64,000 nt of DNA from Hemiscyllium ocellatum (taxonomy: Eukaryota): positions 1-64,000 of the forward strand of contig NW_026867458.1 in assembly GCF_020745735.1 (NCBI RefSeq), given 5' to 3'. This document shows, piece after piece, positions 10,391 to 64,000 of this stretch. Below the pieces are notes generated by a model, which saw nothing but the letters and a program-made list of their open reading frames with translations, made no database searches and was not told the origin of the DNA. The first letter of the stretch is position 1. Every line of letters starts with the position of its first letter. The position numbers and the translations under genes are program-made.

Positions 10391-10394
10391 TGAA

Positions 10395-40128: not shown

Positions 40129-40220
40129 TGCCTGAAGAAGGGCTTATGCCCGAAACATCGATTCTCCTGCTCCTTGGATGCTGCCTGACCTGCTGCGCTT
40201 TTCTAGCAACACATTTTTCA
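40129..40220 (+). mobile_element. 92-bp Penelope terminal-repeat insertion with 14-bp TSD
   Basis: gcatacggctggta (40115-40128) / gcatatggcaggta (40221-40234); the insert starts at the hammerhead-like core. Confidence 0.8.
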
Positions 40221-41053: not shown

Positions 41054-41284
41054 CTAGGAGAAAGTGAGGACCGCAGATGCTGGAGATCAGAGCTTAAAAA
41101 TGTGTTGCTGGAAAAGCGCAGCAGGTCAGGCAGCATCAAAGGAGCAGGAGAATCGGCGTTTCGGGCATAAGCCCTTCTTCAGGAATCAGGCTTCAGAAGG
41201 GCTTATTTATGTCCAAAACGTCGATTCTCCTGCTCCTTTGATGCTGCCTGACCTGCTGCGCTTTTCCAGCAACACATTTTTAAG
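41054..41284. mobile_element. Penelope-derived foldback mini-element with perfect 15-bp TSD
   Basis: ccatgtttaaatcaa at 41039-41053 and 41285-41299; two inverted terminal-repeat copies with hammerhead-like cores in the centre. Confidence 0.9.
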
Positions 41285-41959
41285 CCATGTTTAAATCAAG
41301 TCTGTAATTCAGTCATGAGCTGAGTAGGCCTTGCGCAACCCACATTTTATGTCACTGAGCAGGTTATTACTGAGCTAGTGCTGCTTGATAGCACTGTTGA
41401 AAGCACCTTCCTACACCTAACTCATGATTGAGCATGGACTGATGGAGCAGTAATTCGCCAGGGTGGTTTGACCTATTTTCTGTGCACAGGACATGCCTGG
41501 CCTATTTTCCACATTGTCCATGCCAGTATTGTAGCTGTACTGGGAGTGCTTGGCTAGCACAAGTCAGCAGTATTATTGCCAGAATTTTGTCAGGCTCCAT
41601 AGCATTTGCAGTAACCAGTGCCCCCCGCCCAACAGTGTCTTGATTTCACATGGAGAGAAGCGAATTCCCTGAAGACAGGTATCTGTAATATTGGTGATCT
41701 ATAGAAGATGCTGAGATGGATCAGACAATTGGCACTTCTGGCTGACGATTGCTGTGAATGCTTCAGCCTTAACTTTTGCGCTGATGTGTTGTGCTCTCCA
41801 AAGCAGAGCAAGGGGATATCTGTGGAGCTTATTCCTTCAATGAGTTGTTTAATTATCAACTTTAGTTCATGACTTGATGTGGCAGCACTGCAGGCTCAGA
41901 CCCCAGTTTCCTAAAGTAATGGTCTAGCCACAATATCTCCAGACTATAACTCCAACCCA

Positions 41960-42420
41960 CACTCCATGATGTGGATATGCACAACAGAAGATCGCTTATC
42001 CTTTGTATTTGTAGATTCCAACAATGCATCGTATATTCACTTAATTTGTTAGTCTTGAAAATGCTTTACTTCACAGACTTTAGGATATAATGTTCTGTTT
42101 TCAATTCTTCTCTCCAACAGGCAAGGTCATCGATGTCACACTGGCTTTCCTCCTCATTAATTGCAAAACCAAACGTTTTTCACCTCATCTTTGAACTTAC
42201 TGATCAAAATTGCTACATTCTTGACTAGATCGTTCATATACGCTGCAAACAGCAAAGGATCTAGCACCAAGTCGTATAGTAAGCCACTGGACACAAGATG
42301 TCTTCACAATGTCTACCTTCGACCATTACCTTCTGCCAACAAATAACCTTCGATGCATTTGCCAAACTGCACCAGATCCCATGAACCCTTAGTATATTGA
42401 AGATGCAAGACCTGGTCAAA
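41960..42420 (-). mobile_element. Highly decayed CR1 RT fragment
   Basis: Minus strand ggttcatgggatctggtgcagtttggcaaatg...gtaatggtcgaagg resembles the CR1 HGI.G...RQRVMVEG region. Confidence 0.5.
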
Positions 42421-43392
42421 AACCTGATTGAAGTCAAGAAGCATCACATCCACTTTTTACACCCGATGGCACATCTCATTGCCTCTGCGGAAAACAGAAT
42501 CAACCACTTCCGATATGATCTCACTTCCACCAAAGCCCTGCTGAATTTTATTGCTTAAATGTTACAATTCCAACTTTTAATGAATGCTGTCTCTTAGATT
42601 TATTTATTACCTTCCCTCAAGCTTTCTACTTTTAAACATAGGTTTATGAGCGAAACTACATATTGTCATTTCGCTCCTTTCACCCGATGATATCTCTTCT
42701 TATCTCTCTGACAGATAATTTACTCGAGCTGAAATAATCTTGTGTCTCTTCTGCTTCATTCTGGAAAATGGGAATGGAATTGAATACAATGTTGAGACCA
42801 ACAGCAAACTGTCCGTTTGTTCTTGACACTGTCAGTGTGTGTTCACCCTCAGAGGTAGGAAGACTGTTTGTGCTGATAATACGGAAAGTAGCGCCTGATG
42901 TATCATTCTCAGCTGGCGCGCAACTTCCTGTTTCTATGTGCCAGCAGCAAGCCACACATCTCACTTCTGATCAGAAAATAAACCCAGGGGATACAATCTG
43001 GCAGAAACACCTGCCAATGTGGCCTAGATCAGGACACAGAGTGTGAAGTGATCACATTGAAGTGACATTTGCAAATCGACCTTTCGATCTCTATTTCACG
43101 GTCTGATTCCAGGACGTCGTTGGACGAGTCTCTCGACGATCTAACAAGCTCATTCGATTCACTAACGTCTGGAACACATTGACATGCACCTTTCCATGTC
43201 TTTGATCTTGTACTATTTGTTACTCTCTCTTCAGATTTAATGTTCCCAGCTTTTGATTCTGTCTTCTGTATCCATCACCTTCCCACCCAAATACATTCTG
43301 TTTGATCTATTTCCTAAATTTTGATCAACTAAACAAATAATACAGTTTAGTACAGACAGGTATGTTGGTGTGTCCGATTAACAGAATCAGTA

Positions 43393-46300
43393 TATGGAGA
43401 GATCATATTGGCTGTATCTAAATCTGACCAACATTGAATTCAAATAAACCACCGCACTGTGTGGTTTCAAACCTTGCAAATCTTCTCTCTTTGATAGAGC
43501 TTGTTCTAACAGTTAATTCTTGTCTTGATTATTTCAGAAACTATAACTAAAAATCCCTATTTTTAACCAAGTTTCAAATATTATTACAAGTTGCAGCACT
43601 GGCATTTCCTACAGTGAGCGTTGTGGTGTTTAAATGTTCTGGTCAAAATTTGCTTCAAGCAGAAGACTGAACCATTGGTTTCTCTGAGTTCCCAGCCACT
43701 GCCCTTGCAGTTCCATAATAACTGCAAGCTATTGATAAGCCCCAGAATGAACAGAATGTCCAGGCCCTGTACACATCCAAACGCCATGATGGAGGCCTCG
43801 AAGCCCTCCGTTTCTTCCTGTCATGCCAACCCAAGCAGTACATGCTCAACCTCAACTACATTTCCTTTCAATCCTCCCACTTCCTCCAAACCAAAGGGTA
43901 GCCATGGACCCCAGCTATGCCTGCCTCTTCGTCAGATATGTGGAACAGTCAATCTTCCACAGCTACACCGGTATCATTGCCCACCTTTACCACCGCTACA
44001 TTGATGACTGTATCAATGCCACCTCATGCAACCACTAGGAGGTTGAACAGTTCATTAACTTTACGAAAACCTTCCACCCTGACCTAAACTTTACAGGGAC
44101 CATCTCGGACACCTCCCTCCCTTTCCTAGACCTCTCCATCTCTATCTCCAGTGACCAACTAAACATTTACTACAAGCCCACTGACTCCCACAGCTACCTG
44201 GACTACACCTCCTCCCACCTGACCTCAGGTAAAAATGCCATCCTTTATTCTCAATTCCTCTGCCTCCACCGCATCTGCTCCCAGGAGGTCCAGTTCCACC
44301 ATAAAACATCCCAGATCCTTTATCAAAGAATGCAATTTCCCCTCCCACGTGGTCGATGATGCCTTGAACCCCATCCCTCCAATCGCAACAGGGAGCCCTC
44401 CTGGTCCTCATCTTCCACCGCACCAACCTTGCATACATCATATCATCCTCTGCTGCTTCCACCACTGTAAACAGACCCCATCACTCGGGGTATATTTCCC
44501 TCCCTACACCTATCTGCATTCCGGAGACACCATTCCCTCCACGACTCCCTCGTCAGGTCCATGCCCCCCACCAGCCCACTCCCCACCCCTGTCACCTTCC
44601 CCTGTCACCACAGGAAGTGCAAAACCTGCGCCCACACCTCCCCCCTCACCTCCGACAAGGCCCCAAATGATCCTTCCACATCCCACAGAAACTTATCTAT
44701 ACTTCCACAAATGTCATCCACTGTGTCTGTTCCACCCGATGTGGTCTCCTCTGCATCAGGGAGACAGGACACTAACTTGCAGATCATTTAAGAGAACATC
44801 TCTGGGACACCCGTGCCAACCAACCCCACGGCCCTGTGGCTGAACACTTTAACTCCCCCTCCCACTCCACCAAGAACAGCCAGTCATATTCCTGTTCAAT
44901 TCCAATGAATAAATACAAAATAACGAGTCTGAATTTGGGATGATATTGATAGGATTTATTTCAATCTAAGCATGAACAGATTATTTTGACTTAACAGGTG
45001 GAGAGATTCACTTCCTGAAAAAGCAGCTCAAGTGATATAAGCTGGCACCAAACCGAGTTGGTCAATACTGAGGCAAAAGTACAGCATCCAGTCTTGAGTG
45101 AAATAAATAAAGAAACTATCTTAACCCCGGAACAAGATAGAGTGTATTAAATATGAACAAAGACTCGAGTATTTTAGGATATAATAGAAAAGTAATTTAT
45201 AGTATATTGAAATGCAAACAGAGATGTGAAGCCTCTACATTCTTCCTAGCTAAATTAATCATTTCAGAAATTTGTTAATTTTCATGTGTCACTCGTCGGT
45301 CCATTCCACGAACCTTGCGAGGTCCTTGTTAAATTCTGAACCATCAGGCGATGGTTCTCAGTGGTTGCGAGTTTCATGTTACAGCAAATTGTGATGTTGT
45401 CCACTGTATGCCAATGTCTTAGTTAAAAATTTGAAGCAATCACAACTCCAAACATTTACACAATATCACTATGGATCTTCCTTGAGTCCAAAAAAAATCC
45501 CTTTGATCAATGATTTCTAAAATTTGTTCCCATATCTTTTTTTGAAGGACGTTTTCAAATAACTTGAAGTGCAAATGGTTCACATCAGTCGGAATACAGT
45601 AACATTTCATGTGTTACCCCACACAAAAAAAATCAAGCAATTTTGTTATCACGAGTTGTTCTAAGCAAGTCTAGGATGGACTGTTTTATCAAACAAAATC
45701 ATTTCCAATGTTGTGAGGGCTCGTCTATCTTCTGTGCAATGGTCTGAATTTTGTATCTGAATGCAGATGTAACTGGCTGCTCTGGGTAAAAGTACAGTTT
45801 GTGCCTTTCACATTGTTAATGTGTATTGCTGACTTTAGTTGAATAAAGTGATGTTGTCCCAGGCATCGTCTGGCACCATTAATTAGACCATTAATTTCCA
45901 CATTGCTAGCCGGAGAGTCAGGTGGAGTTTATTAATATCATTGAACCGAAGGCTTGGAATATTTCCGGTATGAATCATGTGAATTAGAGCCTCTGAACGA
46001 GACAAAGTAGGAAAGATGAATTGAGGAAAGATGAAGTTTTCACGACAGAGAGAGATCACTTCGCCCATTACACCTGTATCATGTGAAAACAGAACCTTCC
46101 AGCCAACACCCACTTTATAGCATGTTGTCCATAACCCTGCAGGTGATAGCACTTGAAGTAAACATTCGGGAACATTGTGTAGGGTCTAATCCATTATCAA
46201 CATAGATATGATCTCCAATGCTGTAAATCCTGGCTTATGGGGAAAAAAGTAGGGGCAGAACACCCATTTCTAAACGTTGTTTCTCAGGACGTTTTGACAA

Positions 46301-48293
46301 TTCTTGACTTAATATCATTGTAAACTGACATGAAAAAAATGCAGACATGTTCCCCAGAAACGCTGACAGCAACATACCTTTACTCAGTCAAGATCAGCAA
46401 GATGAATTAAGAAAGTTTTTAAAAATCTTTGTTTTAACTGATTATTGACAACACGGATTTCACAAAGTGAAAAGTACAGAAGGGAAGGGGGAGGGCTGGG
46501 TGTGGACGATGTTCACTTGTGAGAAACAAAGCTCACACACTTCAATAATTTTCAGTCCGAGACAAAATCTGAATCAGTGGTGCCCTTTATTTTACTCTTG
46601 CAAGACGGTGTGATGTCCACTGTCCACAAGGCAGGGACACACACACTGAATTCAACTAATACACAATATTTATGTAATTTGGTTTCTATTTTTTTATTTC
46701 ATTGCTCCTCCCTGTTTACATCTTCCACTTCCCTAAGACCGGCGCCCTCCTTGTCTGTGACAAATGCTTATTTCTGGCCTCACAAGGCTGTTTGACCTCA
46801 TCCCGCTGTGGCCCATTGTTAGGCATATCCTTTCTTCACTATTATCTATTCCCTCCATCTGTGCCTTCCCCTACCATACTGATCCTTATGAACCTTTTAA
46901 TTGGGGTTTGTTCCTGTGTTTCAGTAAAAGTGGGAAACAGATGTTTATACCTACTGTTTGTACAGGCGTATCTAGCTTAACTCCCTCCCCTCACAGCATC
47001 TTATCTATTCGTCTGTAATATCTACCATTGTTTTGCAGTCACGTTTCATTGTTGCATACAATTTTAGTGAATACAAAAACAATTATGTATTTCCTCCACA
47101 TCGTTTCCATTCTTGTTGACTCAGCTCTTGGCTGAAACAATTACACACTGGTGTGAGTTCATTTACTTTGTATAAGTAATTATAATTGCAGAAGTAACAC
47201 TACTTTACCTATATCCCACACACTGTTCCCTGATGTCTGGTTGCATTTGTGAGCAACAGGTGAACCTGCGAACCAGATTCAGGATGGTACTGCAGGTATT
47301 TCAGCAGATACTGTGTAAACGGAATTCTCCCATAAATCAGCAATGACATGAACATTTATTTTTTATGGTGTTTGAAACCAAATAAAATTGAACAATATGG
47401 TGGGACAAGTTCCTTTCATTTCTTTGAACTAGTATCAAGGGACACTCTCTGTGGGCCGGGGTGGCAGGAGGATCTTTAACAGCAGAATGTGAGGGAACAA
47501 AGTTACCGTTGGAAATCCAGATAGACTGGAACTTGTTTCACTGGAGGGTGAGAGTTTCGGGGGTGACCTCATATAAGTTTATAAAGCCATGAGTGGAAAG
47601 GTGAATGGCTCTAATTTACATGATTCATCCTGGAAATGTACAAAGCTTTCGTTTCAAAAATATCACATATCAATAAACTCCACCTGATCCTCTGGCGAGT
47701 GATGTGGAAATTAATGGTCTAATTAATGGTGCCAGACGATGCCTGGGGCAACATCCCTTTATTCAACTAAAGTCAGCAATATACATTAACAATGTGAAAG
47801 GCGCAAACTGTACTTTTACCCCAGAGCAGCCAGTTTCATCTGCAGTCAGACACAACTTCAAAATTCAGACCGTTGCACAGAAGATAGACGAGCCCTCACA
47901 ACACTGGAAATGAATTTTGTTGATAAAAGAATTCATCGTAGACTTCCTCAGAGCAACTCATGTCAACAAACTTGTTTTTTTTTGTGTGTGGGGTAACAAC
48001 GAAATGTCACTTTAATACGATTGATGTGAACCACTTGCATTTCAGAGTTATTTGAAAACGTCATCACATTAGATATACGCGAATAAATTTACAAATCATT
48101 GATCAAAGGGGACAATCTTTTTTGGACTCAAGGAAGATCCATAGTGATATTTTGTAAATGTTTGGAGGCTGGGATGTTTTCAATTTTGACCCAGACATTG
48201 TGTATTTCCCTATGGGGGGATTTCAACAATAGGGAACATGTTTTACAATGAGAGGAGAAAAATTTTTAAAACAATATCAGAGGCAGCTTTTTA
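43393..48293 (+). repeat. Left arm of a >=4.9 kb inverted segmental duplication (pairs with 59058-64000)
   Basis: Near-identical ORFs on opposite strands (43584-43787 vs 63606-63809; 45883-46152 vs 61236-61505); spot-checked blocks differ by only a few bases. Confidence 0.97.
43745..44880 (+). mobile_element. Truncated, decayed Penelope-like element (RT 3' part/GIY-YIG) inside the left arm
   Basis: SHFLQTKGVAMDPSYACLFV.YVEQS and YIDDC motifs; homologous to 24400-25550. Confidence 0.85.
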
Positions 48294-48793
48294 NNNNNNN
48301 NNNNNNNNNNNNNNNNNNNNNNNNNNNNNNNNNNNNNNNNNNNNNNNNNNNNNNNNNNNNNNNNNNNNNNNNNNNNNNNNNNNNNNNNNNNNNNNNNNNN
48401 NNNNNNNNNNNNNNNNNNNNNNNNNNNNNNNNNNNNNNNNNNNNNNNNNNNNNNNNNNNNNNNNNNNNNNNNNNNNNNNNNNNNNNNNNNNNNNNNNNNN
48501 NNNNNNNNNNNNNNNNNNNNNNNNNNNNNNNNNNNNNNNNNNNNNNNNNNNNNNNNNNNNNNNNNNNNNNNNNNNNNNNNNNNNNNNNNNNNNNNNNNNN
48601 NNNNNNNNNNNNNNNNNNNNNNNNNNNNNNNNNNNNNNNNNNNNNNNNNNNNNNNNNNNNNNNNNNNNNNNNNNNNNNNNNNNNNNNNNNNNNNNNNNNN
48701 NNNNNNNNNNNNNNNNNNNNNNNNNNNNNNNNNNNNNNNNNNNNNNNNNNNNNNNNNNNNNNNNNNNNNNNNNNNNNNNNNNNNNNNNNNNNN
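48294..48793. other. Assembly gap, exactly 500 N
   Basis: N run; the round length suggests a placeholder of unknown true size. Confidence 0.99.
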
Positions 48794-48946
48794 GTTGTGT
48801 GATTTTTAAACTTTGTACACCCCAGTCCAACACCAGCATCTCCAAATCATGGTTTCCTTTTGAATGATTTGACTGTGTTTTCACTGAATGAACAGAGCTA
48901 TTTCTTAATCATTTAATAGGAATGAAGCTTCCCTCATTTTTAGCAA

Positions 48947-49146
48947 CTGCTGAAAATGTATTGCTGGAAAAGCGCAGCAGGTCAGGCAGCATCCAAGGAG
49001 CAGGCAGCATCCAAGGAGCCCTTCCTGAAGAAGGCTCATGCCCGAAACGTCGATTCTCCTGCTCCTTGGATGCTGCCTGACCTGCTGTGCTTTTCCAGCA
49101 ACACATTTTCAGCTCTGATCTCCAGCATCTGCACTCCTCACTTTCT
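48947..49146. mobile_element. Penelope-derived foldback mini-element with 15-bp TSD (1 mismatch)
   Basis: cctcatttttagcaa (48932-48946) / cctcattattagcaa (49147-49161). Confidence 0.85.
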
Positions 49147-50149
49147 CCTCATTATTAGCAAGGCAATCACACATTATATTTCTTGATTCCAGGGAAGTAT
49201 AGTGTTAAATTAATGAAATATGATGATTGGGATGTTTATATTGGAAATTGTCAGATATTAAAGTTTACTTTCATGAGCAATTAATTCCAGCCTCATTGTG
49301 TCACAGTACTCACAGGAATGTCTTTCAGAAATGGTGTCTCCCTTTGTTATGGGCAGTCGAATCAGTAAATCTGGGATAGTTTTTGCTTGTTAAACAAAGG
49401 TGTTAAAGAGTTTAGCCAAAGGGAGACCTGTGGATTGAGCTCACAGATGCACCATGATCTAAGTAAGTGGGGGAACAACTAGAGGGGCTGAGTGCCCTCC
49501 TCTTGTTCCTACCTTCCTATCATTGTGTCATTCATTAAGCTAGCACTGGCCGTGAATACTTTTTATTAAAATAGTTTGATAAATTAATTGTTTCACACAT
49601 GCTTTAAAAAAAACTTCTGTTGATTATTTGGAACGGGATCACTGACATTCTCTATTTGAGTGATCAAAATAACTTCCACCCAATTACAGCAGCCACTGCA
49701 CTCTGCAGTGTGTTGTTACTTCATAATAGTTTCTTGTGAAACTACAGCTCGAGATCAGGGCACTCAAATTCAATAATATCTCTGAACATTTGCAATTTGT
49801 TCAAATGCATCTTTTCTCTGAAGAACGTGTTTAATCGAACAGAACGTTTTTCAATGAAACAACAAACTTTAAATGCTAGAAAACCAAAATAAAGACAGAA
49901 ACATCTGAAGAAACTCAGCAGGTCTAGCAGCTCCTGTGGAGAGAAGGCAAGATTAACCTTTCCCATCCAGAGACCCCCTCTTCACCAAATTGTTTTCATG
50001 TTTTTGGCACAAGAGCTCACACCCGTTGAGATAAACAGTGATTCCGTTGGCTTGACTCCTGTTGGAAAAAGGATTCTTAGCAGAGGTACTGGATGGTCTG
50101 AGATAGCAATGGAAGACCAACTGAAAAGCTATCACCATCTGCTGCAAGT

Positions 50150-50900
50150 GTTGGATTCAACGGAAACCCCCACAGTACTGAACAATCAAATTCAGCTACA
50201 GCACTGGTTTAATATAAAGTAAAACAGCCTAAGCAAAATCTCATCAAATATACTTTGAAAATGTTTCATTCGGGATTATTTATAAATGATATTGTTAGAA
50301 CAGCAAGTCAAAAGCTGGGATTTCTTTGAGCACTTACTCCATTAACCCCATCTAGCGATGCCCAAAAGCTTGTGAACAAATATTGATCTGGAAAAAGCTG
50401 CTAACCACCAAAATTCTGTTTAATGTCTAAGAGACACAAGTCAGGACAGCGATTGAATAGATTTCACTGGCCTCTGTGAGTGGAATTCCAACAAACACCC
50501 AAACATCTCAATCTGCTTTCTTGTACTGAAGTAACCTGATAAGAGATGGTGTTACATACCTCTCTAACAGGTTGTAAGTGAACACAGGCCACCTGGCACA
50601 GAATCAGGGACCCTACCACAACATCACAACAGACCTGAACACAATGAGCTCGACACTATCACGGAGAACACAGCTCACCTGTTTCGACAGTTTATAAACC
50701 ATGTTAGTTATTAACACCTTCCAACAACCAGGGATTGTTCCAGAATGTTTGTACAATGAAAGTAACATTTCAACATTTATCCAAGAATACTTTGACAGCT
50801 GCTCCAAATTGTTCAAACTCGATGGGAACTACAGAGCAATAAAACTAGGAATTGCATTGCCATCAATTCACTGTCACGAGATTCCAACCTCGAACTCCCT
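50150..50900 (+). mobile_element. Highly decayed L2/CR1-group LINE RT C-terminal fragment in the J-C intron
   Basis: NDIVRTASQKLGFL, TQVRTAIE and LDTI....AHL motifs match the LINE at 39500-41900. Confidence 0.6.
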
Positions 50901-51859
50901 TCCTCTTTCCCCTGTGAATGTTGCTGCACCAGACGGTCTACTTAGTTTGAAAAAGATTAAAATGTTTTGAAGTGTAATAAGACCATTGCCAGTAACATTA
51001 AAAGCTGATAATAAGTTTTCAAATAATAAGATGCAAAAAAAAATTCTGATTTTACATTGTGCCACGAAACATCTCCTGCATAACTGAGGCACAAAGAAAA
51101 TATGCAGCATATTTCCCTCTGCCTCGCTCAATCAAATATCTCTTGTTGTCAACAACCAATTTCAAAACTCTTGCTATCTGCCTTTTGTTCCTGAAACATT
51201 CGTTCTGATTGGAACAACTTAGTCAGGGCTCTCAATTCTGAGGCACCTAATCAAATATTGTATTTCTGGCAGATAAAAGTGGTTTTGAAGCGCGAGATAA
51301 AATTGAACTGTCTGAGATTCAGGTATCCGAACTGGACAATTTATAAATGGTCAGGACCGTGGACAAGTTAGTCAGAGATAGCACTGAAACAAACTGTACA
51401 ACAGACTTAATCCCAGAGGATACATTGCTCAACTCCTCACGTCAAATATATTCACTGTAATTGAATATTCATCAGAGGAACTAACCAGTGGATTAATGTG
51501 AACGAGAATGTGTTCACAATGAACATAAATAACCACTGAGTTCATAAACTTAATAAGTCATTGTATTTAACAAAATTATTGAGGTGGGAAATATCGCCAA
51601 TTAAAGCACAGATCTGGAGGAAATGGATTATTCTCTAAATTATTTTTACATATTCTTAAAACGTTCCTCGAATTGTGGAGATTTTGCATGCACTGCATAA
51701 ACAATACTGCATTCCAGTGTGGAAAGCATTTCTGTTGAAGGAATTAGGGCAAGGTTATTTTCTTGTTAACTGCTTGTAATGAACTAAAATGTTGAAAAAG
51801 GTATGAATTGAAAACATGCTTCTGTCTGGAGTTGCCCACTTTAACGGATGTCTAAGTAA

Positions 51860-52150
51860 ATGTGGCACTGCTGCCTCACAGATCCAGGTACCCAGGCTCG
51901 GTTCCAGCCTCGGGTGATGGCCTATGTGGAGTTTACACAATCTCCCCTGTGTCTGTGTGGATTTCCTCCCAAAATCCAAAGATGTGCAAGTCAGGTGAAC
52001 TGGTCATGCTATATTGTCTATAGTGTTAGGTGCATCAGTCAGGGGTAAATATAGGGTAGGGGAATGGGTCTGGTGGGTTCCTCTTCAGAGGGTCGGTGTG
52101 GACTTGTTGGGCCAAATGGCCTGATACATACTGCAGGAAATCTAATCTAA
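51860..52150 (+). mobile_element. HE1-type SINE
   Basis: gcactgctgcctcacag...ggctcggttccagcctcgggtga...gtggagtttacacaatctcccc; aatctaatcta tail. Confidence 0.85.
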
Positions 52151-52394
52151 ATGATTGTCACACTGAACTAATGTGAGCAGATTCCTTCAGATCGCTACAT
52201 TGCAATAAATCGATCAAGTATATTAATTAAAATAAATATTACTCTATTTTCAGTGTTTGAATAAACAATGTGCTCTGTTATCCTCTAGTTCATGTCTTCT
52301 GCAAATTTGTGAACTCTGCATACGCCTGAACACATCGATGTAAAATGAATTTTCTGCGTTTGCAGCAAGTACTCCCATGGTTTTAAGAGGAGAG

Positions 52395-52736
52395 TTCCTA
52401 CAGTATGGAAACAGGCCATTTGGCCCAACAATTCCACACTGACCCTCTGAACAGTAAGTCGCCCACCCAGACCCATTCCCCCTAATTTATATTTGTCCTT
52501 GACTAATGCACCCTAACCTAGACATCCCTGAACACTATGGCTGTGCTAAACTGCACAATCACCTGACCTGCACATCTTTTGGACTGTGGTAGGAAACCAC
52601 AGCACCCGAAGGAAACCCACACAGACACAGGGAGAATGTGCAAACTCCACACAGGCAGTCACCCGAGGGTGGAATCAAATTTGGGACCCTGGCGCTGTGA
52701 GGCAGCAATGCCAATCACTGAGCCACCATGCTGCCC
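52395..52736 (-). mobile_element. HE1-type SINE
   Basis: Reverse complement of the HE1 head (gggcagcatggtggctcagtgattggcattgctgcctcacagcgcc) and core. Confidence 0.88.
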
Positions 52737-54349
52737 TGGAGTTCATGAGTGGATTACTTTAATTAATTCGAAATTTGGTTGGTCACATAATTCACTATAG
52801 CAGTTGTTTCCTGAAGAATGACTCTTCAGTTGATATTTTGTTGTAAAATGTAACTATTTATTTAAAATGCACAGATTGGGAACACCTAAAGCACTGTGCA
52901 GGTTAAATAATTCAGTTAATGTTTTATTTTTATCCTGCAAATCCAGTTTAATCAGGGGCATAACAATTAATTAACTCAAGTTATATGTGAAACTGATCAA
53001 AGCAGTGAAACTGATCTGTTCTACATAGAATTGAGCAGAATTTCCAAATGGTCTTTGCCAATGATCTTTTCCAGCCAGAAAAATATGTATGTAGTGTACA
53101 GCGGAATTGAAAGGTGTTTCTTGATCAATTATAGCACAGTCATGGCATTTTTGCTCAACAGCAAGAACTATTAGAACATTAGACTTTTGAAATTCTATTT
53201 ATATTTCTCTATGACTTGTAAACTGTTTAAAGACAGACTTTGTGATTGAACTAGATAGTTGAGTTTCGAATTTGGATTGTAAAGCATGGATTAGATTAAT
53301 CCTTAATTATTTATTTTAAGTAAAAATAGCACCTGAAGGTATCTGTTTTCCCTTCATTTCTAAAACCTGTGCGATTTGCCTTTCACTTTATAGTAGACTT
53401 TATGAAATTTTAACTCGCATGCTGATTGCATTGAATGAGGAAAGAGCAGTTCACTGTCACCAACCGTGTTAACATTGCAAAAACAATGTCGAAACCAGAA
53501 ACGGTTTCCCAAATATAACACATTTAATGTTACCCAAGCACAGTCCCTCCTCAACAGATCAACGATCACCAGATCACAACACGGTATGTTTGCAGCAGAA
53601 CTAGCTCTGCAAACATTTTCAACAGAACCAAGAACATGATGTCACCTCACAAATAAAACCAAATTGAAGTCTAACAAAGCTGCTCAGAATCAAGCAAACT
53701 AATGATTAAATTGAATAGAAATAACAGGTCATAATAGCAACCTTGTTTTGAGGGGACTTAACACTTAAAGCTGTAACGTTTCTGGCAATAGTTCAATTTA
53801 TTTCTAACCTGCACACCCTTCCTGATCATGACAATCTTGTGCAGCGCACAGTAGAGTGGGGTTGAAGGCATATATTGATTAATCACCTCATGGTCAAAAC
53901 AAAATTACTGAATGGACAAATATTACCACATTATAATTTTAAGTTAGTTTCAATTACGTAATCTGATCAATTCTGCAGTTTCAGATTTAGGTCCCAAATT
54001 TTATTTTGAATGAGGCTACTCAAAACAAAATTCAGTTCGTTTACAATTAGAACGGAGTTTTTTTAAAAAAGTCAATCCATTAAAAACTCATTTTTTTTTT
54101 CATTTCTCACACATCTGGGTTTCTGCCTTAAGTTGTTTTTCAGACCGTTACAAATGGATGTCCTGTTTTCAATCAAGCGGAGAAAAACGTGTCATATAAG
54201 TTTAACAAATGCAGAAATGATTCATGAAAAACAAAAGAACTTCACAAATATTGGTAATGAAAAGTATTCCAGAGAGTCAATCTCCTCACCAGAAAGAAAA
54301 CACCAACTCAGAAAGCATGAAAACGCAGATCAATTTCACAAACTGAATA

Positions 54350-54640
54350 AGAATCCAATCAACTCAATTCAACAGAATCAAAGAAAATAAAATCAGAATC
54401 CAATCAACTCAAAACAACAGATTTGAATGAAACATAATCAGAATCCAACCAATTCAATTCAACAGAATCAAATAAAACCATTTCAAAAGTCAATCAACAC
54501 AATTCAACAAAACCAAGTAAAAACAAAGTCAGAATCCAATCAACACAGTTCAACCCGAATCAACTAAAACAAAGCCAAAATCCAATCAACTCAATTCAAC
54601 AGAATCAAGTAAAACAAACTCCGAATCTAATCAACAGAAT
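54350..54640. repeat. ~45-bp degenerate tandem repeat (~6.5 copies) in the J-C intron
   Basis: gaatccaatc-like anchors at 54351, 54396, 54441, 54486, 54532, 54578 and 54623. Confidence 0.85.
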
Positions 54641-55155
54641 GCAATATAGCACCGCAAGAAACTTTGATGACAGTTTCTAACCTGCTTGTCATCAACAAAA
54701 TTAACAAAATAAATGAGAAAATATAATCATGGTAAGAACATATATTCAAGAAATGAATAATGATATTTTAGCATATTTTAGTCATGTTTGGTAATATCTT
54801 GAACATCTTTGAATTCGTAGCATTTGTTGTTGATAATAAAACTCACAGTCAGGGTGTCACTGACATTAAACATTATTTATAGCTGACTGATTAAGAGACA
54901 TTAGGTGTTTCAAGTAACCCAGCCACAAAGAATATCCATCTGATCAAAAAAAAAAGAGATACACTGAGCAAATGACTCCATCATCACCATTTTAACTATT
55001 TGCTGAGCCTTAACTGAAGTCTATAATCAGTCTGAACAAAAATCAATCCGAACCAAACCAAACTCAGCACAGAATCTGAGTTTCATTTAATTCAGAAATT
55101 AGTCACATGAATAGAAAGTTTTTAAAAAGTCACTAAGAATGTTCAAAGTTCTTAC

Positions 55156-55203
55156 CTGAAGTCACTGTCACCATGGTCCCTTGGCCCCAGTCATCAAGAT
55201 AGT
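55156..55203 (-). CDS. IGHJ: Ig heavy-chain JH segment (YLDDWGQGTMVTVTS)
   Basis: WGQG motif, VTVTS end, GTAAG splice donor at 55155-55151, upstream 23-RSS. Confidence 0.97.
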
Positions 55204-55242
55204 CACAGTGTTACATTCTCTGGATTGGATCACACAATAACT
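55204..55242 (-). other. JH 23-bp-spacer RSS
   Basis: On + strand: CACAGTG (55204-55210), 23 nt, ACAATAACT (55234-55242). Confidence 0.92.
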
Positions 55243-55569
55243 AGCTCTGCATAAAACAAATCAAAAATCTACCATCATTTTAAATTTTCAGAACCACAGG
55301 CAAAATAAAGTCACGATAAATCTTCATCACATAATTGCGCGAGTGAATTCTGATCATCCTTGATAAATTTTAATACTGTTTTATACTTCACAGAGTAACA
55401 CATCAGCTGATTCTCAAAATCCCCAACTGGTGTATCAATAATTACCCAACACTTTTACAAATTAAATAGTGATACTGGCATAAAACCCCACAGAACTAAT
55501 ACCGAACTGCAAGTTAAGACGGTTTGTAGAAGTAATCACTGACTAGATTCAAACAATGGAGGCTGAATA

Positions 55570-55640
55570 GGTTTTTGTATTGATCATAATTGCAGTGTCA
55601 CCCCAGCTATATCACTGTGAGACACGTTGTGTCAAATACT
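55570..55640 (-). other. IGHD: IgH D2 segment ATATAGCTGGGGTGA (55598-55612) with 12/12 RSSs
   Basis: On + strand: GGTTTTTGT-12-TGCAGTG, D core, CACTGTG-12-TCAAATACT. Confidence 0.9.
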
Positions 55641-55943
55641 ATGACAGACTGTAAACTGTAAAATGCAAATAATTTCTTCACTTCCTAGAAAGCAGTGATT
55701 CAGACTCCTCGAAAAATGATTTGGTGCATTATTTCAGCTTTTACTATTCATTGTATTTTGAAAGCTTGGAATACTTTTCCAGGTTTGGTCTGCATTTAAC
55801 TTGACAATCAACACGAAGAAGGTAGAAAACAATTCTACATTTGTACAAACTAGCACGACTGGATTGTGTTTAAATTGCAGCTCACATTATTTCTCGCTCC
55901 TGCCACGGTAGAAATCACCAATTTGAGATAAATCCTTGTCGGT

Positions 55944-56023
55944 GGTTATTGTATGAGGATGTCGCTGTGCACAGCACTGTGACCCACTGTAGTATCACAA
56001 TGATGTAGACCAGTACACTCATT
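55944..56023 (-). other. IGHD: IgH D1 segment ATACTACAGTGGGT (55982-55995) with 12 (V-side)/22 (J-side) RSSs
   Basis: On + strand: GGTTATTGT-22-CACTGTG, D core, CACAATG-12-ACACTCATT; all three D frames are open (YYSG in frame 2). Confidence 0.92.
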
Positions 56024-56371
56024 CTCTGTTCTTTACTCTAGGTCTCAATTTTCATTTGAAAGAGCCATTTAGCACTGATCATGTTTAGAATGAATGCCAT
56101 AGTTGACATAACAATTAGCAGTGATTTCCTGAGCTGTCAGATATATTTTGTCCCAGCATTTAATTGATGGAAGTGTTAGCAGTACATATGACATGCCTAA
56201 AACATTGTCCCATTGTGTCACCAGTTTGCTAGTTTCAATGGTACATTTCCTCTTTGATAGCTTTGTAAGAGGCAGCCTGAGGTCTGCTTCAGATCGCAGT
56301 TGGTATAATTGCATTTAAAACTCAAACTGACCATCAGTTTATGATGGAATTGACAAAATGTTCCCTCGAGC

Positions 56372-56410
56372 TGTTTTTGAACGGGTTCAGCCCTGGTTCC
56401 TCTCGCTGTG
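56372..56410 (-). other. VH 23-bp-spacer RSS
   Basis: Minus strand CACAGCG-23-TCAAAAACA immediately after YYCARD. Confidence 0.93.
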
Positions 56411-56715
56411 GTCTCTTGCACAGTAATAGATGGCGGTGTCTTCGATCTTCAGGTTAGTCATTTTCAACGAGAAAATGTTGTTTGAATTGTCTTTGGACGC
56501 AGTAAATCGACCCTGAATCGCTGGTGCATAGTTATTGCTGGATGAACTATAGTAGCTAACCAGCCACTCCAGACCCTGGCCGGGAACCTGGCGGACCCAG
56601 CTCATGTAGCTGCTGCTGAGATCGAACCCGCTGGTTTTACAGGTCAGTGTCAGGCTGCTTCCGGGATGGCCAGTCTCTGCCTCTGGCTGGGTCAAAACAA
56701 CCTCCGACTGGACAC
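56411..56715 (-). CDS. IGHV: Ig heavy-chain V exon, shark IgM-type VH, open reading frame
   Basis: (C)[101 protein letters not shown]; both Cys and the Trp are conserved; AG acceptor at 56717-56716. IgM rather than IgW is assigned from recalled framework similarity and the two-D layout. Confidence 0.97.
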
Positions 56716-56820
56716 CTTTAAAAAAGACAAGAAATAAACCATGAGCATTACTTTTACATTCCTGAGGTAGACTAACATTGAGACAGCAACAAAGACAGAC
56801 TTAAACAAAAAAACACTCAC

Positions 56821-56869
56821 ATGATAAGAAAGTCAGTAATAAACTGAGAAAAATTGTCGACACAATCAT
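56821..56869 (-). CDS. IGHV: VH leader exon (MIVSTIFLSLLLTFLS + 1 nt)
   Basis: Hydrophobic signal peptide, GTGAGT donor, 105-bp phase-1 intron in frame with the V exon. Confidence 0.95.
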
Positions 56870-56955
56870 TCTGATAACTTCTGGGAAGCGGTTCTGTCAA
56901 GATCTTTCTAAACAAAGCCGATCCCGGAGTGTTGAATTACGGTCCAGTGCCTAGG

Positions 56956-57010
56956 ATTTATATGGCTATCGGAAAGGGCAGGCTCACAGCTTCCGCCTGT
57001 TGGTTTCCTG
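56956..57010 (-). promoter_or_regulatory. Putative VH promoter: TATAAAT (56962-56956) with upstream GGAA (ETS-like) motifs, no octamer
   Basis: TATA box 87 bp upstream of the ATG; CAGGAAAC and GGCGGAAG just upstream of it. Confidence 0.55.
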
Positions 57011-57230
57011 CTGGAGACTGAGACTGGATCCTGGTCTCAGCTTGCACAGCCCCAACACATGGGTGCATATCTTTACCAGGTTATGCTTAAACATGGATAT
57101 ATACACATCTTGGGATATTTATTTTGCTGAATAGCTTCTTTGGGAGTGTTTTTTTTAAATGGTGGAAGTAAAATTGAGTACCTTCAGGTCTATTTCACAT
57201 GATAGTTGCAAGTATTTTGCTTTAAAATAA

Positions 57231-57686
57231 ATTCATTCGGAAGTTAGCTCCCTTTATTTCTACATTCATTCACAAACAGATAAAACTAAAATCGAAGTTC
57301 AAACGTATTACTAGCTAGTAAAACAATTGAGTTTTTATTTCCCAGGACACTGCCAGTCTCTGTCCCACTACAAAATAACATGTAATTCATACTAAACATT
57401 TCAAAATTCAATTTAGGCAACTGAATACAGAGCGTGTCCAAAGTGATTATATTCAGAATATTCAATTAGAAGTTAACTCCCTTTAATTCTACATTCCACC
57501 ACAAGCAGATAAAGCTAAAAAGAACTTCAATCATATTATTAACCAACAAAATGAGTGACTTTATTTTTGCTGTCACTCAACGTCTCTCTCACTTTACAAA
57601 ATAACATCCCATTTCTAATCTGCGTTTCTAAATTCCATTTAGGCAACCTAATATGGAGCAGGACTAAAGTGATTATGTTCAGAATG
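57231..57686. repeat. Degenerate ~228-bp direct tandem duplication upstream of VH
   Basis: Paired anchors agttagctcc/agttaactcc (57242/57471) and aagtgattatattcagaat/aagtgattatgttcagaat (57441/57667). Confidence 0.75.
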
Positions 57687-58849
57687 TGAGTGGATATCAC
57701 TAAACAGTTTGGACCCGGAGATTAGAAGCACCTCCTGACATTGCAGAATGTCAGGAGACTCCTTGCATCTTTTTTTTCAAATTTTTTAAAATGCATAGTA
57801 AAGGAAAGCTGTGTGCCTGAGAAACAAAAAGTGAGTTGGCAGTGCTACATAACACCTAGGTAAACTTTTGAAAGAGCATCTAATGAACTAGAACAGGACA
57901 GTCCATACTTTTTTTTAAAAAATCCTCAACACCTAAACCATTGCAGGTAACTGTCTGGGTACATCAGGAGTGTTTGGTTAAATTAGAGAGTATTACAATA
58001 ATCATTACCACGAATGTAGGTTATAAACAGTACATTTCTCTGCTCACTGATAGCTCTGACAGGGGCAGTTAACTCATAAAAATAAGCAGAAATTCGCTGT
58101 TACACGACACCAGTGTTAACCATGTATAAAGGGCCCACTCAGTTTTAATGAGATAAATGAATCAGAGAATGGTGTACCAAGTGATGTGAGTTTGAACCAA
58201 TTCAAGTTTGTTAATTTACTTTGAGATGATAACAAATGTTACTGCAATGTGGGATTTTGGATCCATTAACTTCATATTCAGGAGCTTTAAAGATACTCAA
58301 TAAACAGGCTGAACTAACCAGAATGTCACTGCATTCAATGTCCTGTTTCTGATAGTCATACGGTGAATGCTGTATTCAGTGACTTTCCTTTTTAAAGAAG
58401 AAATGCCAAGTGAAATGTATCCATTGTGAGTAAATGGGAAAATATAGTTTGTTTGGTATGATTTTACTTTAGTTGATTCATTTTCCCTTTAATCGGCCAG
58501 ATACAATCGTTGGCAGCAATTAAGCTGCTGCAGAAAAGGTCCTTGAGTTTCCAGGTTCATTTCCTGGAAGCAGGTGGAGTTTCTGCAGGGGATCAAAGAT
58601 ATTTTGTCTCACTGGTGACCAGTTGGTGGAAAGCAAACTGCAGACCATAACCACTGCCTCTGCAGAAACAAATCTACTCAGCAACAATACTGGAGAAAAG
58701 TTTATTTTTCAGTTGTGAAACTTGGAGAACTAGTCCCTCCTCTCATTGAAGGAAATATTCGCAGAGTCTCAGACACAACCTAAACATCAACAGTTCATTT
58801 GAGGATCACTGCAGCACTGTTTAATATTGAGAAAAATTGATAAATAGTC

Positions 58850-59150
58850 ATAGAGTCATGGAGTGATTCAGCATGGAAACAGACACTTCAGTCCAACCAG
58901 TCCATGCCAGTCATAATCCCAAACTAAACTAATCCCACCTGCGTGTACTTGGCCCATATCCTTCCAAACATTTGATATTCATTTACTTATCCAAATGTCT
59001 TCTATAGGTTGTAAGTATCCACCACCAGATCATCCCACACACAAACCATTCTCTGTGTAAAAAGTTGTCTCTGATATCGTTTTAAAAATTTTTCTCCTCT
59101 CATTGTAAAACATGTTCCCTATTGTTGAAATCCCCCACCATAGGGAAAAT
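58850..59150 (-). mobile_element. CR1 3' end fragment
   Basis: catagagtcat...cagcatggaaacagacacttcagtccaacc tail in reverse orientation. Confidence 0.7.
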
Positions 59151-62100
59151 ACGACAATGTCTGGGTCAAAAATTGAGAACAATCCCAGCTCCAAACATTT
59201 ACAAAATATTACTATGGATCTTCCTTGAGTCCAAAAAAGATTGTCTCCTTTGATCAATGATTTGTAAAATTTATTCGCGTATCTAATGTGATGGACGTTT
59301 TCAAATAACTTCTGAAATGCAATTGGTTCACATCAATCGTATTAAAGTGACATTTCGTGTGTGACCCCACACACATAAAAAACAAGTTTGTTGACATGAG
59401 TTGCTCTGAGGAAGTCTACGATGAATTCTTTTATCAAACAAAATCATTTCCAGTGTTGTGAGGGCTTGTCTATCTTCTGTGCAATGGTCTGAATTTTGAA
59501 GTTGTGTCTGACTGCAGATGAAACTGGCTGCTCTGGGTAAAAGTACAGTTTGCGCCTTTCACATTGTTAATGTATATTGCTGACTTTAGTTGAATAAAGG
59601 GATGTTGCCCCAGGCATCGTCTGGCACCATTAATTAGACCATTAATTTCCACATCGCTCGCCAGAGGATCAGGTGGAGTTTATTGATATGTGATATTTTT
59701 GAAACGAAAGCTTCGTACATTTCCAGGATGAATCATGTAAATTAGAGCCATTCACCTTTCCACTCATGGCTTTATAAACTTATATGAGGTCACCCCCCGA
59801 ACTCTCACCCTCCAGTGAAACAAGTTCCAGTCTATCTGGATTTCCAACGGTAACTTTGTTCCCTCACATTCTGCTGTTAAAGATCCTCCTGCCACCCCAG
59901 GTCCACAGAGAGTGTCCCTTGATACTAGTTCAAAGAAATGAAAGGAACTTGTCCCAGCATATTGTTCAATTTTATTTGGCTTCAAACACCATAAAAAATA
60001 AATGTTCATGTCATTGCTGATTTATGGGAGAATTCCGTTTACACAGTATCTGCTGAAATATCTGCAATACCATCCTGAATCTGGTTCGCAGGTTCACCTG
60101 TTGCTCACAAATGCAACCAGACATCAGGGAGCAGTGTGTGGGATATAGGTAAAGTAGTGTTACTTCTGCAATTATAATTACTTATACAAAGTAAATGAAC
60201 TCACACCAGTGTGTAATTGTTTCAGCCAAGAGCTGAGTCAACAAGAATGGAAATGATGTGGAGGAAATACATAATTGTTTTTGTATTCACTAAAAATGTA
60301 TGCAAGAATGAAACGTGACTGCAAAACAATGGTAGATATTACAGACGAATAGATAAGATGCTGTGAGGGGAGGGAGTTAAGCTAGATACGCCTGTACAAA
60401 CAATAGGTATAAACATCTGTTTCCCACTTTTACTGAAACACAGGAACAAACCCCAATTAAAAGGGTCATAAGGATCAGTATGGTAGGGGAAGGCACAGAT
60501 GGAGGGAATAGATAATAGTGAAGAAAGGATATGCCTAACAATGACCCACAGCGGGATGAGGTCAAACAGCCTTGTGAGGCCAGAAATAAGCATTTTGTCA
60601 CAGACAAGGCTGGATAAGGCAAGAGATAAACAGGAGTAATGGGCGCCGGTCTTAGGGAAGTGGAAGATGTAAACAGGGGAGGAGCAATGAAATAATAATA
60701 TAGAAACCAAATTACATAAATATTGTGTATTAGTTGAATTCAGTGTGTGTGTCCCTGCCTTGTGGACATGGACATCACACCATCTTGCAAGAGTAAAGTA
60801 AAGGGCACCACTGATTCAGATTTTGTCTCGAACTGAAATTATTGAAGTGTGTGAGCTTTGTTTCTCACAAGTGAACATTGTCCACACCCAGCCCTCCACC
60901 CTTCCCTTCTGTACTTTTCACTTTGTGAAATCCGTGTTGCCAATAATCAGTTAAAAGAAAGATTTTTTAAAACTTTCTTAATTCATCTTGCTGATCTTGA
61001 CTGAGTAAAGGTATGTTGCTGTCAGCATTTCTGGGGAACATGTCTGCATTTTTTTCATGTCAGTTTACAATGATATTAAGTCAAGAATTGTCAAAACGTC
61101 CTGAGAAACAACGTTTAGAAATGGGCGTTCTGCCCCTACTTTTTTCCCCATAAGCCAGGATTTACAGCATTGGAGATCATATCTATGTTGATAATGGATT
61201 AGACCCTACACAATGTTCCTGAATGTTTACTTCAAGTGCTATCACCTGCAGGGTTATGGACAACATGCTATAAAGTGGGTGTTGGCTGGAAGGTTCTGTT
61301 TTCACATGATACAGGTGTGATGGGCGAAGTGATCTCTCTCTGTCGTGAAAACTTCATCTTTCCTCAATTCATCTTTCCTACTTTGTCTCATTCAGAGGCT
61401 CTAATTCACATGATTCATACCGGAAATATTCCAAGCCTTCGGTTCAATGATATTAATAAACTCCACCTGACTCTCCAGCTAGCAATGTGGAAATTAATGG
61501 TCTAATTAATGGTGCCAGACGATGCCTGGGACAACATCACTTTATTCAACTAAAGTCAGCAATATACATTAACAATGTGAAAGGCACAAACTGTACTTTT
61601 ACCCAGAGCAGCCAGTTACATCTGCATTCAGATACAAAATTCAGACCATTGCACAGAAGATAGACGAGCCCTCACAACGTTGGAAATGATTTTGTTTGAT
61701 AAAACAGTCCATCCTAGACTTGCTTAGAACAACTCGTGATAACAAAATTGCTTGATTTTTTTTGTGTGGGGTAACACATGAAATGTTACTGTATTCCGAC
61801 TGATGTGAACCATTTGCACTTCAAGTTATTTGAAAACGTCCTTCAAAAAAAGATATGGGAACAAATTTTAGAAATCATTGATCAAAGGGATTTTTTTTGG
61901 ACTCAAGGAAGATCCATAGTGATATTTTGTAAATGTTTGGAGCTGTGATTGCTTCAAATTTTTAACTAAGACATTGGCATACAGTGGACGACATCACAAT
62001 TTGCTGTAACATGAAACTCGCAACCACTGTGAACCATCGCCTGATGGTTCAGAATTTAACAAGGACCTCGCAAGGTTCGTGGAATGGACCGACGAGTGAT

Positions 62101-64000
62101 ACATGAAAATTAACAAAGGCATTTCTGAAATGATTAATTTAGCTAGGAAGAATGTAGAGACCTCACATCTCTGTTTGCATTTCAATATACTATAAATTAC
62201 TTTTCTATTATATCCTAAAATACTCGAGTCTTTGTTCATATTTAATACACTCTATCTTGTTCCGGGGTTAAGATAGTTTCTTTATTTATTTCACTCAAGA
62301 CTGGATGCTGTACTTTTGCCTCAGTATTGACCAAACTCGGTTTGGTGCCAGCTTATATCACTTGAGCTGCTTTTTCAGGAAGTGAATCTCTCCACCTGTT
62401 AAGTCAAAATAATCTGTTCATGCTTAGATTGAAATAAATCCTATTAATATCATCCCAAATTCAGACTCGGTTATTTTGTATTTATTCATTGGAATTGAAC
62501 AGGAATATGACTGGCTGTTCTTGGTGGAGTGGGAGGGGGAGTTAAAGTGTTCAGCCACGGGGCCGTGAGGTTGGTTGGCACGGGTGTCCCAGAGATGTTC
62601 TCTGAAATGATCCGCAAGTTAGTGTCCTGTCTCCCTGATGCAGAGGAGACCACATCGGGTGGAACAGACACAGTGGATGACATTTGTGGAAGTATAGATA
62701 AGTTTCTGTGGGATGTGGAAGGATCATTTGGGGCCTTGTTGGAGGTGAGGGGGAGGTGTGGGCGCAGGTTTTGCACTTCCTGTGGTGACAGGGGAAGGTG
62801 ACAGGGGTGGGGAGTGGGCTGGTGGGGGGCATGGACCTGACGAGGGAGTCGTGGAGGGAATGATGCCTTCGGAATGCAGATAGGTGTAGGGAGGGAAATA
62901 TACCCCGAGTGATGGGGTCTGTTTACAGTGGTGGAAGCAGCAGAGGATGATATGATGTATGCAAGGTTGGTGCGGTGGAAGATGAGGACCAGGAGGGGTC
63001 CCTGTTGCGATTGGAGGGATGGGGTTCAAGGCATCATCGACCACGTGGGAGGGGAAATTGCATTCTTTGATAAAGGATCTGGGATGTTTTATGGTGGAAC
63101 TGGTCCTCCTGGAGCAGATGCGGTGGAGGCAGAGGAATTGAGAATAAAGGATGGCATTTTTACCTGAGGTCGGGTGGGAGGAGGTGTAGTCCAGGTAGCT
63201 GTGGGAGTCAGTGGGCTTGTAGTAAATGTTTAGTTGGTCACTGGAGATAGAGATGGAGAGGTCTAGGAAAGGGAGGGAGGTGTCCGAGATGGTCCCTGTA
63301 AAGTTTAGGTCAGGGTGGAAGGTTTTCGTAAAGTTAATGAACTGTTCAACCTCCTAGTGGTTGCATGAGGTGGCATTGATACAGTCATCAATGTAGCGGT
63401 GGTAAAGGTGGGCAATGATACCGGTGTAGCTGTGGAAGATTGACTGTTCCACATATCTGACGAAGAGGCAGGCATAGCTGGGGTCCATGGCTACCCCTTT
63501 GGTTTGGAGGAAGTGGGAGGATTGAAAGGAAATGTAGTTGAGGTTGAGCATGTACTGCTTGGGTTGGCGTGACAGGAAGAAACTGAGGGCTTCGAGGCCT
63601 CCATCATGGCGTTTGGATGTGTACAGGGCCTGGACATTCTGTTCATTCTGGGGCTTATCAATAGCTTGCAGTTATTATGGAACTGCAAGGGCAGTGGCTG
63701 GGAACTCGGAGAAACCAATGGTTCAGTCTTCTGCTTGAAGCAAATTTTGACCAGAACATTTAAACACCACAACGCTCACTGTAGGAAATGCCAGTGCTGC
63801 AACTTGTAATAATATTTGAAACTTGGTTAAAAATAGGAATTTTTAGTTATAGTTTCTGAAATAATCAAGACAAGAATTAACTGTTAGAACAAGCTCTATC
63901 AAAGAGAGAAGATTTGCAAGGTTTGAAACCACACAGTGCTGTGGTTTATTTGAATTCAATGTTGGTCAGATTTAGATACAGCCAAGGTGATCTCTCCATA
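59058..64000 (-). repeat. Right arm of the inverted segmental duplication (pairs with 43393-48293); continues past the window end
   Basis: Reverse-complement match; the window-terminal sequence matches 43393 onward. Confidence 0.97.
62510..63650 (-). mobile_element. Truncated Penelope-like element, mirror copy of 43745-44880
   Basis: ORF 63354-63551 SHFLQTKGVAMDPSYACLFVRYVEQS...YIDDC. Confidence 0.85.

Follow-up and report, generated by a model that had tools for sequence, protein, structure and literature searches.

We analysed 64,000 nucleotides of the epaulette shark (Hemiscyllium ocellatum) genome, positions 1 to 64,000 of contig NW_026867458.1, referred to below as the window. It contains an unrearranged immunoglobulin (Ig) heavy-chain unit with one V, two D and one J segment (V-D-D-J) that lies between the arms of a long inverted repeat, with a scaffold gap between the unit and the left arm. 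We give a probability of about one half to the reading that the arms are the flanks of two paralogous IgM cluster copies that scaffolding set side by side, in a layout that is unverified. The broader claim that the copies are paralogues, counted over both possible layouts, is likely. A preliminary description of this DNA proposed a palindrome with a second IgM cluster hidden in the gap. That proposal is unproven, and the structure is most likely an assembly break in a multi-copy antibody gene family.

An inverted repeat beside an unrearranged heavy-chain unit

Comparison of the window with itself revealed that 43393-48293 is the reverse complement of 59058-64000. BLAST aligned 43393-46747 with 64000-60641 (98.3% identity, 3,364 nt) and 46749-48293 with 60609-59058 (97.0%, 1,558 nt), and a repeat search of the window returned collinear arm blocks at 96 to 99%. 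The match is far above chance expectation. As in a palindromic duplication, there are two long inverted arms of high identity, at least 4.9 kb at 97 to 98%. When globally aligned, the arms differed by 80 substitutions in 4,893 aligned bases (1.6%) and by 24 insertion/deletion (indel) events, among them a 30-bp block (60610-60639) that is present in the right arm and has no counterpart in the left. The homology reaches the final base ahead of the N run, and 2,189 bp separate 59058 from the VH start codon at 56869. Thus the repeat proved to be as the preliminary description had it: a mirrored VH upstream flank, homology up to the last base before the gap, a mirrored VH start that would fall about 2.2 kb past the end of the homology, and arms that differ by substitutions, an indel of about 30 bp and small indels.

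The picture of a V-D-D-J framed by arms of about 5 kb held only in part. The unit and the arms are real, but they are not symmetric, and 5 kb is only a minimum. The outer limit of the repeat (43393/64000) is imposed by the window end, and the truncation is artificial on both sides: the gap cuts the left arm, and the window end cuts the right arm. The V-D-D-J is part of the right copy, and its counterpart in the left copy lies outside the window. The 10.3 kb between 48794 and 59057 have no mirror in the window; the gap cuts the left arm exactly where that mirror would start. We annotated 43393-48293 (plus strand) as the upstream flank of a plus-strand IgM cluster copy, cut off by the gap within the mirror of an interspersed repeat, and 59058-64000 (minus strand) as the upstream flank of the assembled V-D-D-J. 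No partner of the V-proximal upstream flank (56870-59057, minus strand) is present in the window; the mirrored stretch would have to lie within the gap or past it.

A complete, unrearranged heavy-chain V-D1-D2-J occupies 56869-55156 on the minus strand. Its segments lie about 400 bp apart in one orientation, and their 12/23 recombination signal sequences (RSSs) are compatible. The VH gene (56372-56869) consists of a leader (56869-56821), an intron, a V exon (56715-56411) and a V 23-RSS (56410-56372). The split leader and the splice sites can be read from the sequence, as expected of an elasmobranch Ig heavy-chain V gene. The V exon matches the Pfam V-set domain (E=6e-19), and its best relatives are a bamboo-shark V (86%) and the Heterodontus Ig heavy chain V, HV01 (75%). 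D1 (55995-55982, region 55945-56023), which was read directly from the sequence, has a 12-spacer RSS on the 5' side and a 22/23-spacer RSS on the 3' side. D2 (55612-55598, region 55570-55640) has a 12-spacer RSS on each side. JH (55203-55156, region 55156-55242) is preceded by a 23-spacer RSS (55242-55204) and followed by a splice donor. Of the right cluster's J-to-C intron, which comes next, the first 6.36 kb are assembled (48794-55155, minus strand) and contain no C exon. Two local features were observed along the unit. A 45-bp tandem array occupies 54346-54635 inside the J-to-C intron. At 57017-57084, 150 to 215 bp upstream of the VH start, the assembled copy differs from the read contigs of two samples at six positions in 68 bp, five of them in 21 bp, and a related species has the version seen in the reads. 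Either a short tract of conversion or a complex mutation in the assembled copy's promoter region might account for these differences.

No Ig domain besides V, and no Cμ exon, was found among all stop-to-stop frames of at least 70 residues in the 64-kb window. We compared the window with three IgM clusters of the bamboo shark (Chiloscyllium punctatum), here called L001, L002 (BEZZ01001741.1:120444-142208) and L003. These loci were used for gene order and distances only, never for gap letters. The right contig ends 6.36 kb past J. In L002, the first C exon lies about 9.3 kb past J and about 3.5 kb beyond the last point homologous to the right contig. In L001, the J-to-C distance is at least 9 kb, and more than 2.7 kb separate the last homologous point from the first C exon. 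By these bamboo-shark distances, the absence of C exons from the window is what the contig break leads one to expect, and those of the right cluster must be situated past the end of the contig. We also considered that the right contig might stop exactly at the expected Cμ1. That idea fits the 6.3 to 6.8 kb between J and Cμ1 in the nurse shark (PMC2435157). However, it fails for the closer bamboo-shark clusters, where the intron is at least 9 kb, and we rejected it.

The bamboo-shark clusters also show where the arms belong. Homologues of the arm lie directly upstream of V in L002 and L003, and the arms represent the upstream region conserved in this IgM cluster family. The synteny extends into the left contig beyond the arm. 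Window 38725-41538 matches L001 1-2395 (plus/plus, 88 to 94%), 37255-40368 matches L002 7143-4016, and 41604-43426 matches L003 1644-4940. The identities of about 90, 84 and 78% with L001, L002 and L003 track the divergence of each cluster itself. We annotated the unique part of the left contig outside the arm (37255-43392, plus strand) as the conserved far-upstream region of the family. Because this upstream synteny is conserved, the right arm almost certainly continues past 64000, and the left contig (plus strand) faces a V-D-D-J-C on its right. The left arm is thus a bona fide V-upstream flank, as had been claimed, and a V-D-D-J-C must follow it somewhere. On the other side of the gap, the intron at 48794-55155 is collinear with L001 11300-17882 and L002 11694-17920. 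Between the V-proximal flank and a point 6.3 kb into the intron, L001 and the right contig align collinearly at about 90%; the order in L001 is far-upstream segment, 6.4-kb N gap, V-proximal flank, V-D-D-J and intron.

Two further loci deserve mention. L002 1-11800 holds two IgM-type V units head-to-head about 6 to 7 kb apart, with an inverted repeat (2274-3818 vs 10161-11681) at 83 to 90%. The plus-strand V is open (open reading frame 11358-11765). The minus-strand V (2274-2586) has in-frame stops and is already joined to D, with a D2-type 12-spacer RSS and then a separate J after the joined segment; it is thus a germline VDD-J pseudogene. A whale-shark locus, L004, was tried and was not used, being only about 73 to 80% alike with an ambiguous repeat match. 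At L004 15852-16900 (NC_063338.1), a homologue (73 to 75%) of window 40249-41518 lies downstream of the cluster intron and not upstream of V; it is either a shared old repeat or the upstream region of a tandem neighbour cluster.

The arms are genuinely diverged copies

The differences between the arms have a mutational character. They comprise 52 transitions and 28 transversions, and 25 of the 80 substitutions (31%) are at CpG. With L002 as the outgroup, 16 derived changes fall on the right arm and 28 on the left. The left-arm excess (21 vs 9) is restricted to the 790 bp adjoining the gap; elsewhere the count is 7 vs 7. This transition- and CpG-rich spectrum, with derived changes on both arms, bears out the claim that the arms are genuinely diverged copies, and the substitutions look like real germline mutations.

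The indels behave differently. Half of them (12/24) lie within 320 bp of the gap-side end, 10 of the 12 nearest the gap are left-arm deletions, and 12/20 of the 1-bp indels are in homopolymers. The error-rich look is confined to the last ~330 bp of the arm. The assembly was built from PacBio continuous long reads (CLR), and the crowding beside the gap looks like the decaying consensus of a CLR contig end rather than biology. The reported rise of small indels toward the gap is therefore observed, but it is best taken as contig-end consensus error.

Excluding the gap-side end, the arms diverge by 1.44%. The species' mean nucleotide diversity is 0.002 (PMC10587355), so the arm divergence of 1.44 to 1.6% is seven to eight times the mean. 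A false duplication should show differences that are at the allelic level or due to error only. Here we found 1.44% against 0.2%, with many transitions and CpG changes in the spectrum, and each arm has derived changes of its own. At 1.4 to 1.6% divergence, the phrase "recently duplicated", used in the preliminary description, is only relative. We infer that the copies are paralogues rather than alleles.

We then compared 56001-62000 with Logan contigs of four runs, from three epaulette-shark samples and one related species. Their depths are uncalibrated and are not copy numbers. Left-arm letters are present in the three epaulette-shark samples at 12 or more of the sites where the arms differ, and at 3 or more of them also in the related species. 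Both arm versions exist in the reads. The 3-kb stretch from V to the arm is as variant-dense as the arm itself (21 vs 19 among the sites listed), and one 264-nt contig over the promoter carries 7 differences that are common to the related species. More diverged copies (6 to 7%) of both the arm and the unique flank occur at much lower depth and show a multi-member family. The summed contig depth has no step at 59058, with arm/unique ratios of 1.01, 0.95 and 0.92 in the three samples. Every arm copy therefore seems to carry its own V-proximal region. The main contigs have depths of 111 to 240. In the deepest library that has been described for the species (135x; PMC10587355), a single diploid locus could reach about 108 in 31-mer depth. 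This excess in uncalibrated contig depth leans toward more than one locus.

Two arguments from the reads were set aside. The share of indexed words was tried as a proxy for copy number; the Ig stretch equals the arm-adjacent control (0.61 to 0.69), and the measure is uninformative. The argument from sites that show only the left-arm letter was dropped, because random bubble-popping between two equal copies would give a similar number among the sites listed.

The arms and their surroundings are rich in repeats. A high-copy interspersed repeat (58862-59129) straddles the arm end and has a further copy at 27206-27468; in the bin 58801-59000, k-mer depth exceeds that of the adjacent bins about 200-fold, and a second high-copy region spans 60001-61000. 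The right arm contains a high-copy insert (60137-60919) and a Penelope-like fragment (62516-63528) that is 75 to 79% like window 24488-25554, and both are mirrored in the left arm. Neither L002 nor L003 has the high-copy insert, and L003 also lacks the Penelope-like fragment. Since both inserts are in both arms and are missing in the bamboo shark as stated, they entered the flank before the arms were duplicated. Each arm also holds a 600-bp inverted repeat (59155-59749 vs 61397-61976, with mirrors at 45417-45996 and 47607-48196). It has 85.5% identity and a 1.65-kb core, is conserved in L002 and L003, and could represent either an old element of the foldback type or a structural property of the cluster upstream region. 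A short palindromic repeat of the Penelope terminal-repeat kind (48948-49150) has at least eight copies in the window, for example at 21783-21956, 25650-25777, 39270-39482 and 41056-41280. Farther out in the left contig, 14015-20368 is an array of a 33-bp unit (about 190 units, 68 to 88% matches) beside fragments of long interspersed nuclear elements, and 29340-30141 is an array of a 46-bp unit. An Rfam scan of 43393-64000 gave no family at threshold.

This transposon debris, namely the high-copy stretch at 60001-61000, the Penelope-like fragment and the 600-bp inverted repeat, could suggest that the arms are two insertions of one young transposable element, unrelated to any duplication of the Ig cluster. 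However, the arms are collinear at 97 to 98% across unrelated repeat fragments that match their own families at only 72 to 86%. Moreover, the arm lies upstream of V in three bamboo-shark clusters, and its non-repeat parts have the same depth as the V flank. We consider such an origin very improbable and rejected it as the sole explanation, given the collinearity across unrelated repeats, the bamboo-shark conservation and the non-repeat depth.

The gap and the possible layouts

The scaffold gap (48294-48793) is the only N run in the window, a placeholder of 500 N with arbitrary length. The assembly was made with TrioCanu from 50x PacBio CLR, followed by purge_dups, scaff10x, Bionano and SALSA2, under the Vertebrate Genomes Project (VGP) pipeline v1.6 (PMC10587355). 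Both SALSA2 and 3d-dna join sequences with 500 Ns by default, and among scaffolding methods Hi-C is the one most liable to invert shorter sequences (PMC9292758). Because SALSA2 was used and its default join is 500 Ns, the adjacency and orientation of the contigs at this gap rest on Hi-C alone. No read contig bridges the gap among the short Logan contigs.

The left gap edge lies about 70 bp inside the mirror of the interspersed repeat at 58862-59129. At the right edge the sequence is J-to-C intron, and a palindromic Penelope-type repeat is 150 bp away. Read in the sense of the clusters, 2.2 kb of flank and then V are expected after the left edge, and further intron and then the C exons are expected before the right edge. 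The two edges cannot be contiguous, and the question touches no reading frame. With a correct layout, the gap would hide more than 16 kb plus two constant regions.

We suggest the following course of events. The arms would be the upstream flanks of two separate, near-identical IgM heavy-chain cluster copies, young paralogues in a multi-cluster family. The long-read assembler may have been able to carry neither contig through this family. The left contig would have stopped in the very high-copy interspersed repeat, 2.2 kb upstream of the expected V, and the right contig would start in the J-to-C intron beside the palindromic Penelope-type repeat. SALSA2 would then have joined both contigs with its fixed 500-N placeholder. 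The mirror layout is therefore a statement of Hi-C scaffolding and not sequence evidence, and its orientation is probably unreliable. The V-D-D-J-C of the left copy and the C exons of the right copy need not lie in this gap.

The preliminary description offered a choice between two clusters that converge tail-to-tail and the inverted joining of a paralogous or allelic contig. The evidence is consistent with this pair, and the 500-N placeholder, the bamboo-shark order and the contig-end indels lean to the second. In the convergent layout, the gap would hide the remaining flank, V-D-D-J, intron and C exons of the left cluster together with the rest of the intron and the C exons of the right cluster. 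Such a layout would account for arms that are real diverged copies, for a left arm that points right to the gap and a right cluster that points left to it, and for the flat depth over the arm boundary, by which the left copy has its own V-proximal region somewhere. Inverted IgM pairs also exist in the family, as the two V units of L002 illustrate. However, no sequence links the two contigs, and the placeholder between them has a fixed length and was set by a scaffolder that frequently inverts sequences. The gap would have to hold the more than 16 kb and two constant regions, given that J and C lie about 9.3 kb apart in L002 and 9 kb or more apart in L001. Nurse-shark IgM miniloci are at least 120 kb apart (PMC2435157), and the bamboo-shark precedent is head-to-head instead. 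We therefore regard a true tail-to-tail inverted duplication as rather unlikely.

One locus may also have been assembled twice. The right contig would then be the continuation of the left one, placed flipped, and the arms would be the overlapping ends of two deep haplotypes (a heterotype false duplication), with no second cluster. The left contig followed by the flipped right contig gives the order of L001, namely far-upstream segment, about 7.3 kb, V-proximal flank and V-D-D-J, and the span in L001 is the 6.4-kb N gap. This is the most economical account of the synteny. The gap is where the left arm ends, and false duplications occur at contig boundaries according to the VGP consortium (PMC8081667). 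The flat depth over 59058 fits a single locus equally well, and at site 59902 one sample has the left letter only, one the right letter only and one both. Against these points stand a divergence of seven to eight times the mean diversity, the purge_dups step in the assembly (PMC10587355), main contig depths above that of a single diploid locus in the deepest library described, and the lower-depth copies of the arm and the unique flank at 6 to 7% divergence, which indicate a multi-member family. On balance, a single locus assembled twice seems doubtful.

We thus prefer two paralogous copies brought together by scaffolding, and several points weigh against this preference. Trio binning can put two deep alleles in one haplotype assembly if the father has both. 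Joining the left contig to the flipped right contig would restore the ancestral layout without any second cluster. The sequence view ends at 64000, and the indexed-word share of the arm-adjacent control (0.63 to 0.69) equals that of the Ig stretch and is hence uninformative. The depth argument uses contig depth from coded runs, which is not calibrated copy number. Finally, the samples are probably from one family, so the presence of both versions in all of them does not show fixation.

For annotation, the V-D-D-J should not be treated as an orphan without a constant region, as its C exons are expected a few kilobases past the contig break. Because the assembly probably lacks or misplaces at least one further near-identical cluster, the number of clusters counted in it is a minimum. 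Where a mirror structure in the epaulette-shark genome meets at a 500-N join, long-read or optical-map support is needed before it is called a biological palindrome.

Comparison with known systems

The IgM heavy-chain genes of cartilaginous fish have a multiple-cluster organisation that includes near-identical duplicated clusters (PMC5192425, PMC2435157). The V-D-D-J unit described here is an ordinary member of that system. The only potentially new element would be a tail-to-tail pair of intact clusters, which is not demonstrated. We think it unlikely that the layout is real and that two intact, 98%-identical IgM clusters lie tail-to-tail a few tens of kilobases apart. If it were true, then together with the head-to-head pair of the bamboo shark it would make inverted duplication a recurrent route by which shark IgM miniloci multiply. 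Such inverted duplications would also offer substrates on which gene conversion, and inversional joining or switching from one cluster to another, could act.

Small-indel errors enriched at a contig end, a duplicate that abuts a gap, and the use of CLR with VGP pipeline v1.6 make the structure resemble the false duplications of that pipeline. It differs from them in a divergence above the allelic level with a mutational spectrum, in an assembly that was trio-binned and purged, and in depths that hint at more than one locus.

Among the bamboo-shark clusters, L001 is collinear with the right contig and matches the left contig at its far end, and L002 and L003 carry homologues of the arm. The epaulette-shark arm duplication (1.5%) is much younger than the split between epaulette and bamboo shark (~10%). 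The inverted V pair of L002 is head-to-head and 83 to 90% alike, with one germline-joined pseudogene, whereas the epaulette-shark arms are 98% alike and the clusters would be tail-to-tail.

The nurse and horned shark miniloci share with the epaulette-shark unit the order of RSS spacers (23 / 12-23 / 12-12 / 23), the long J-to-C intron and the many near-identical members. The published nurse-shark miniloci are separated by 120 kb or more, mostly with no known orientation relative to one another (PMC2435157). The epaulette-shark locus differs from these systems in having no assembled C exon and a second copy of the upstream flank that stands inverted across a gap.

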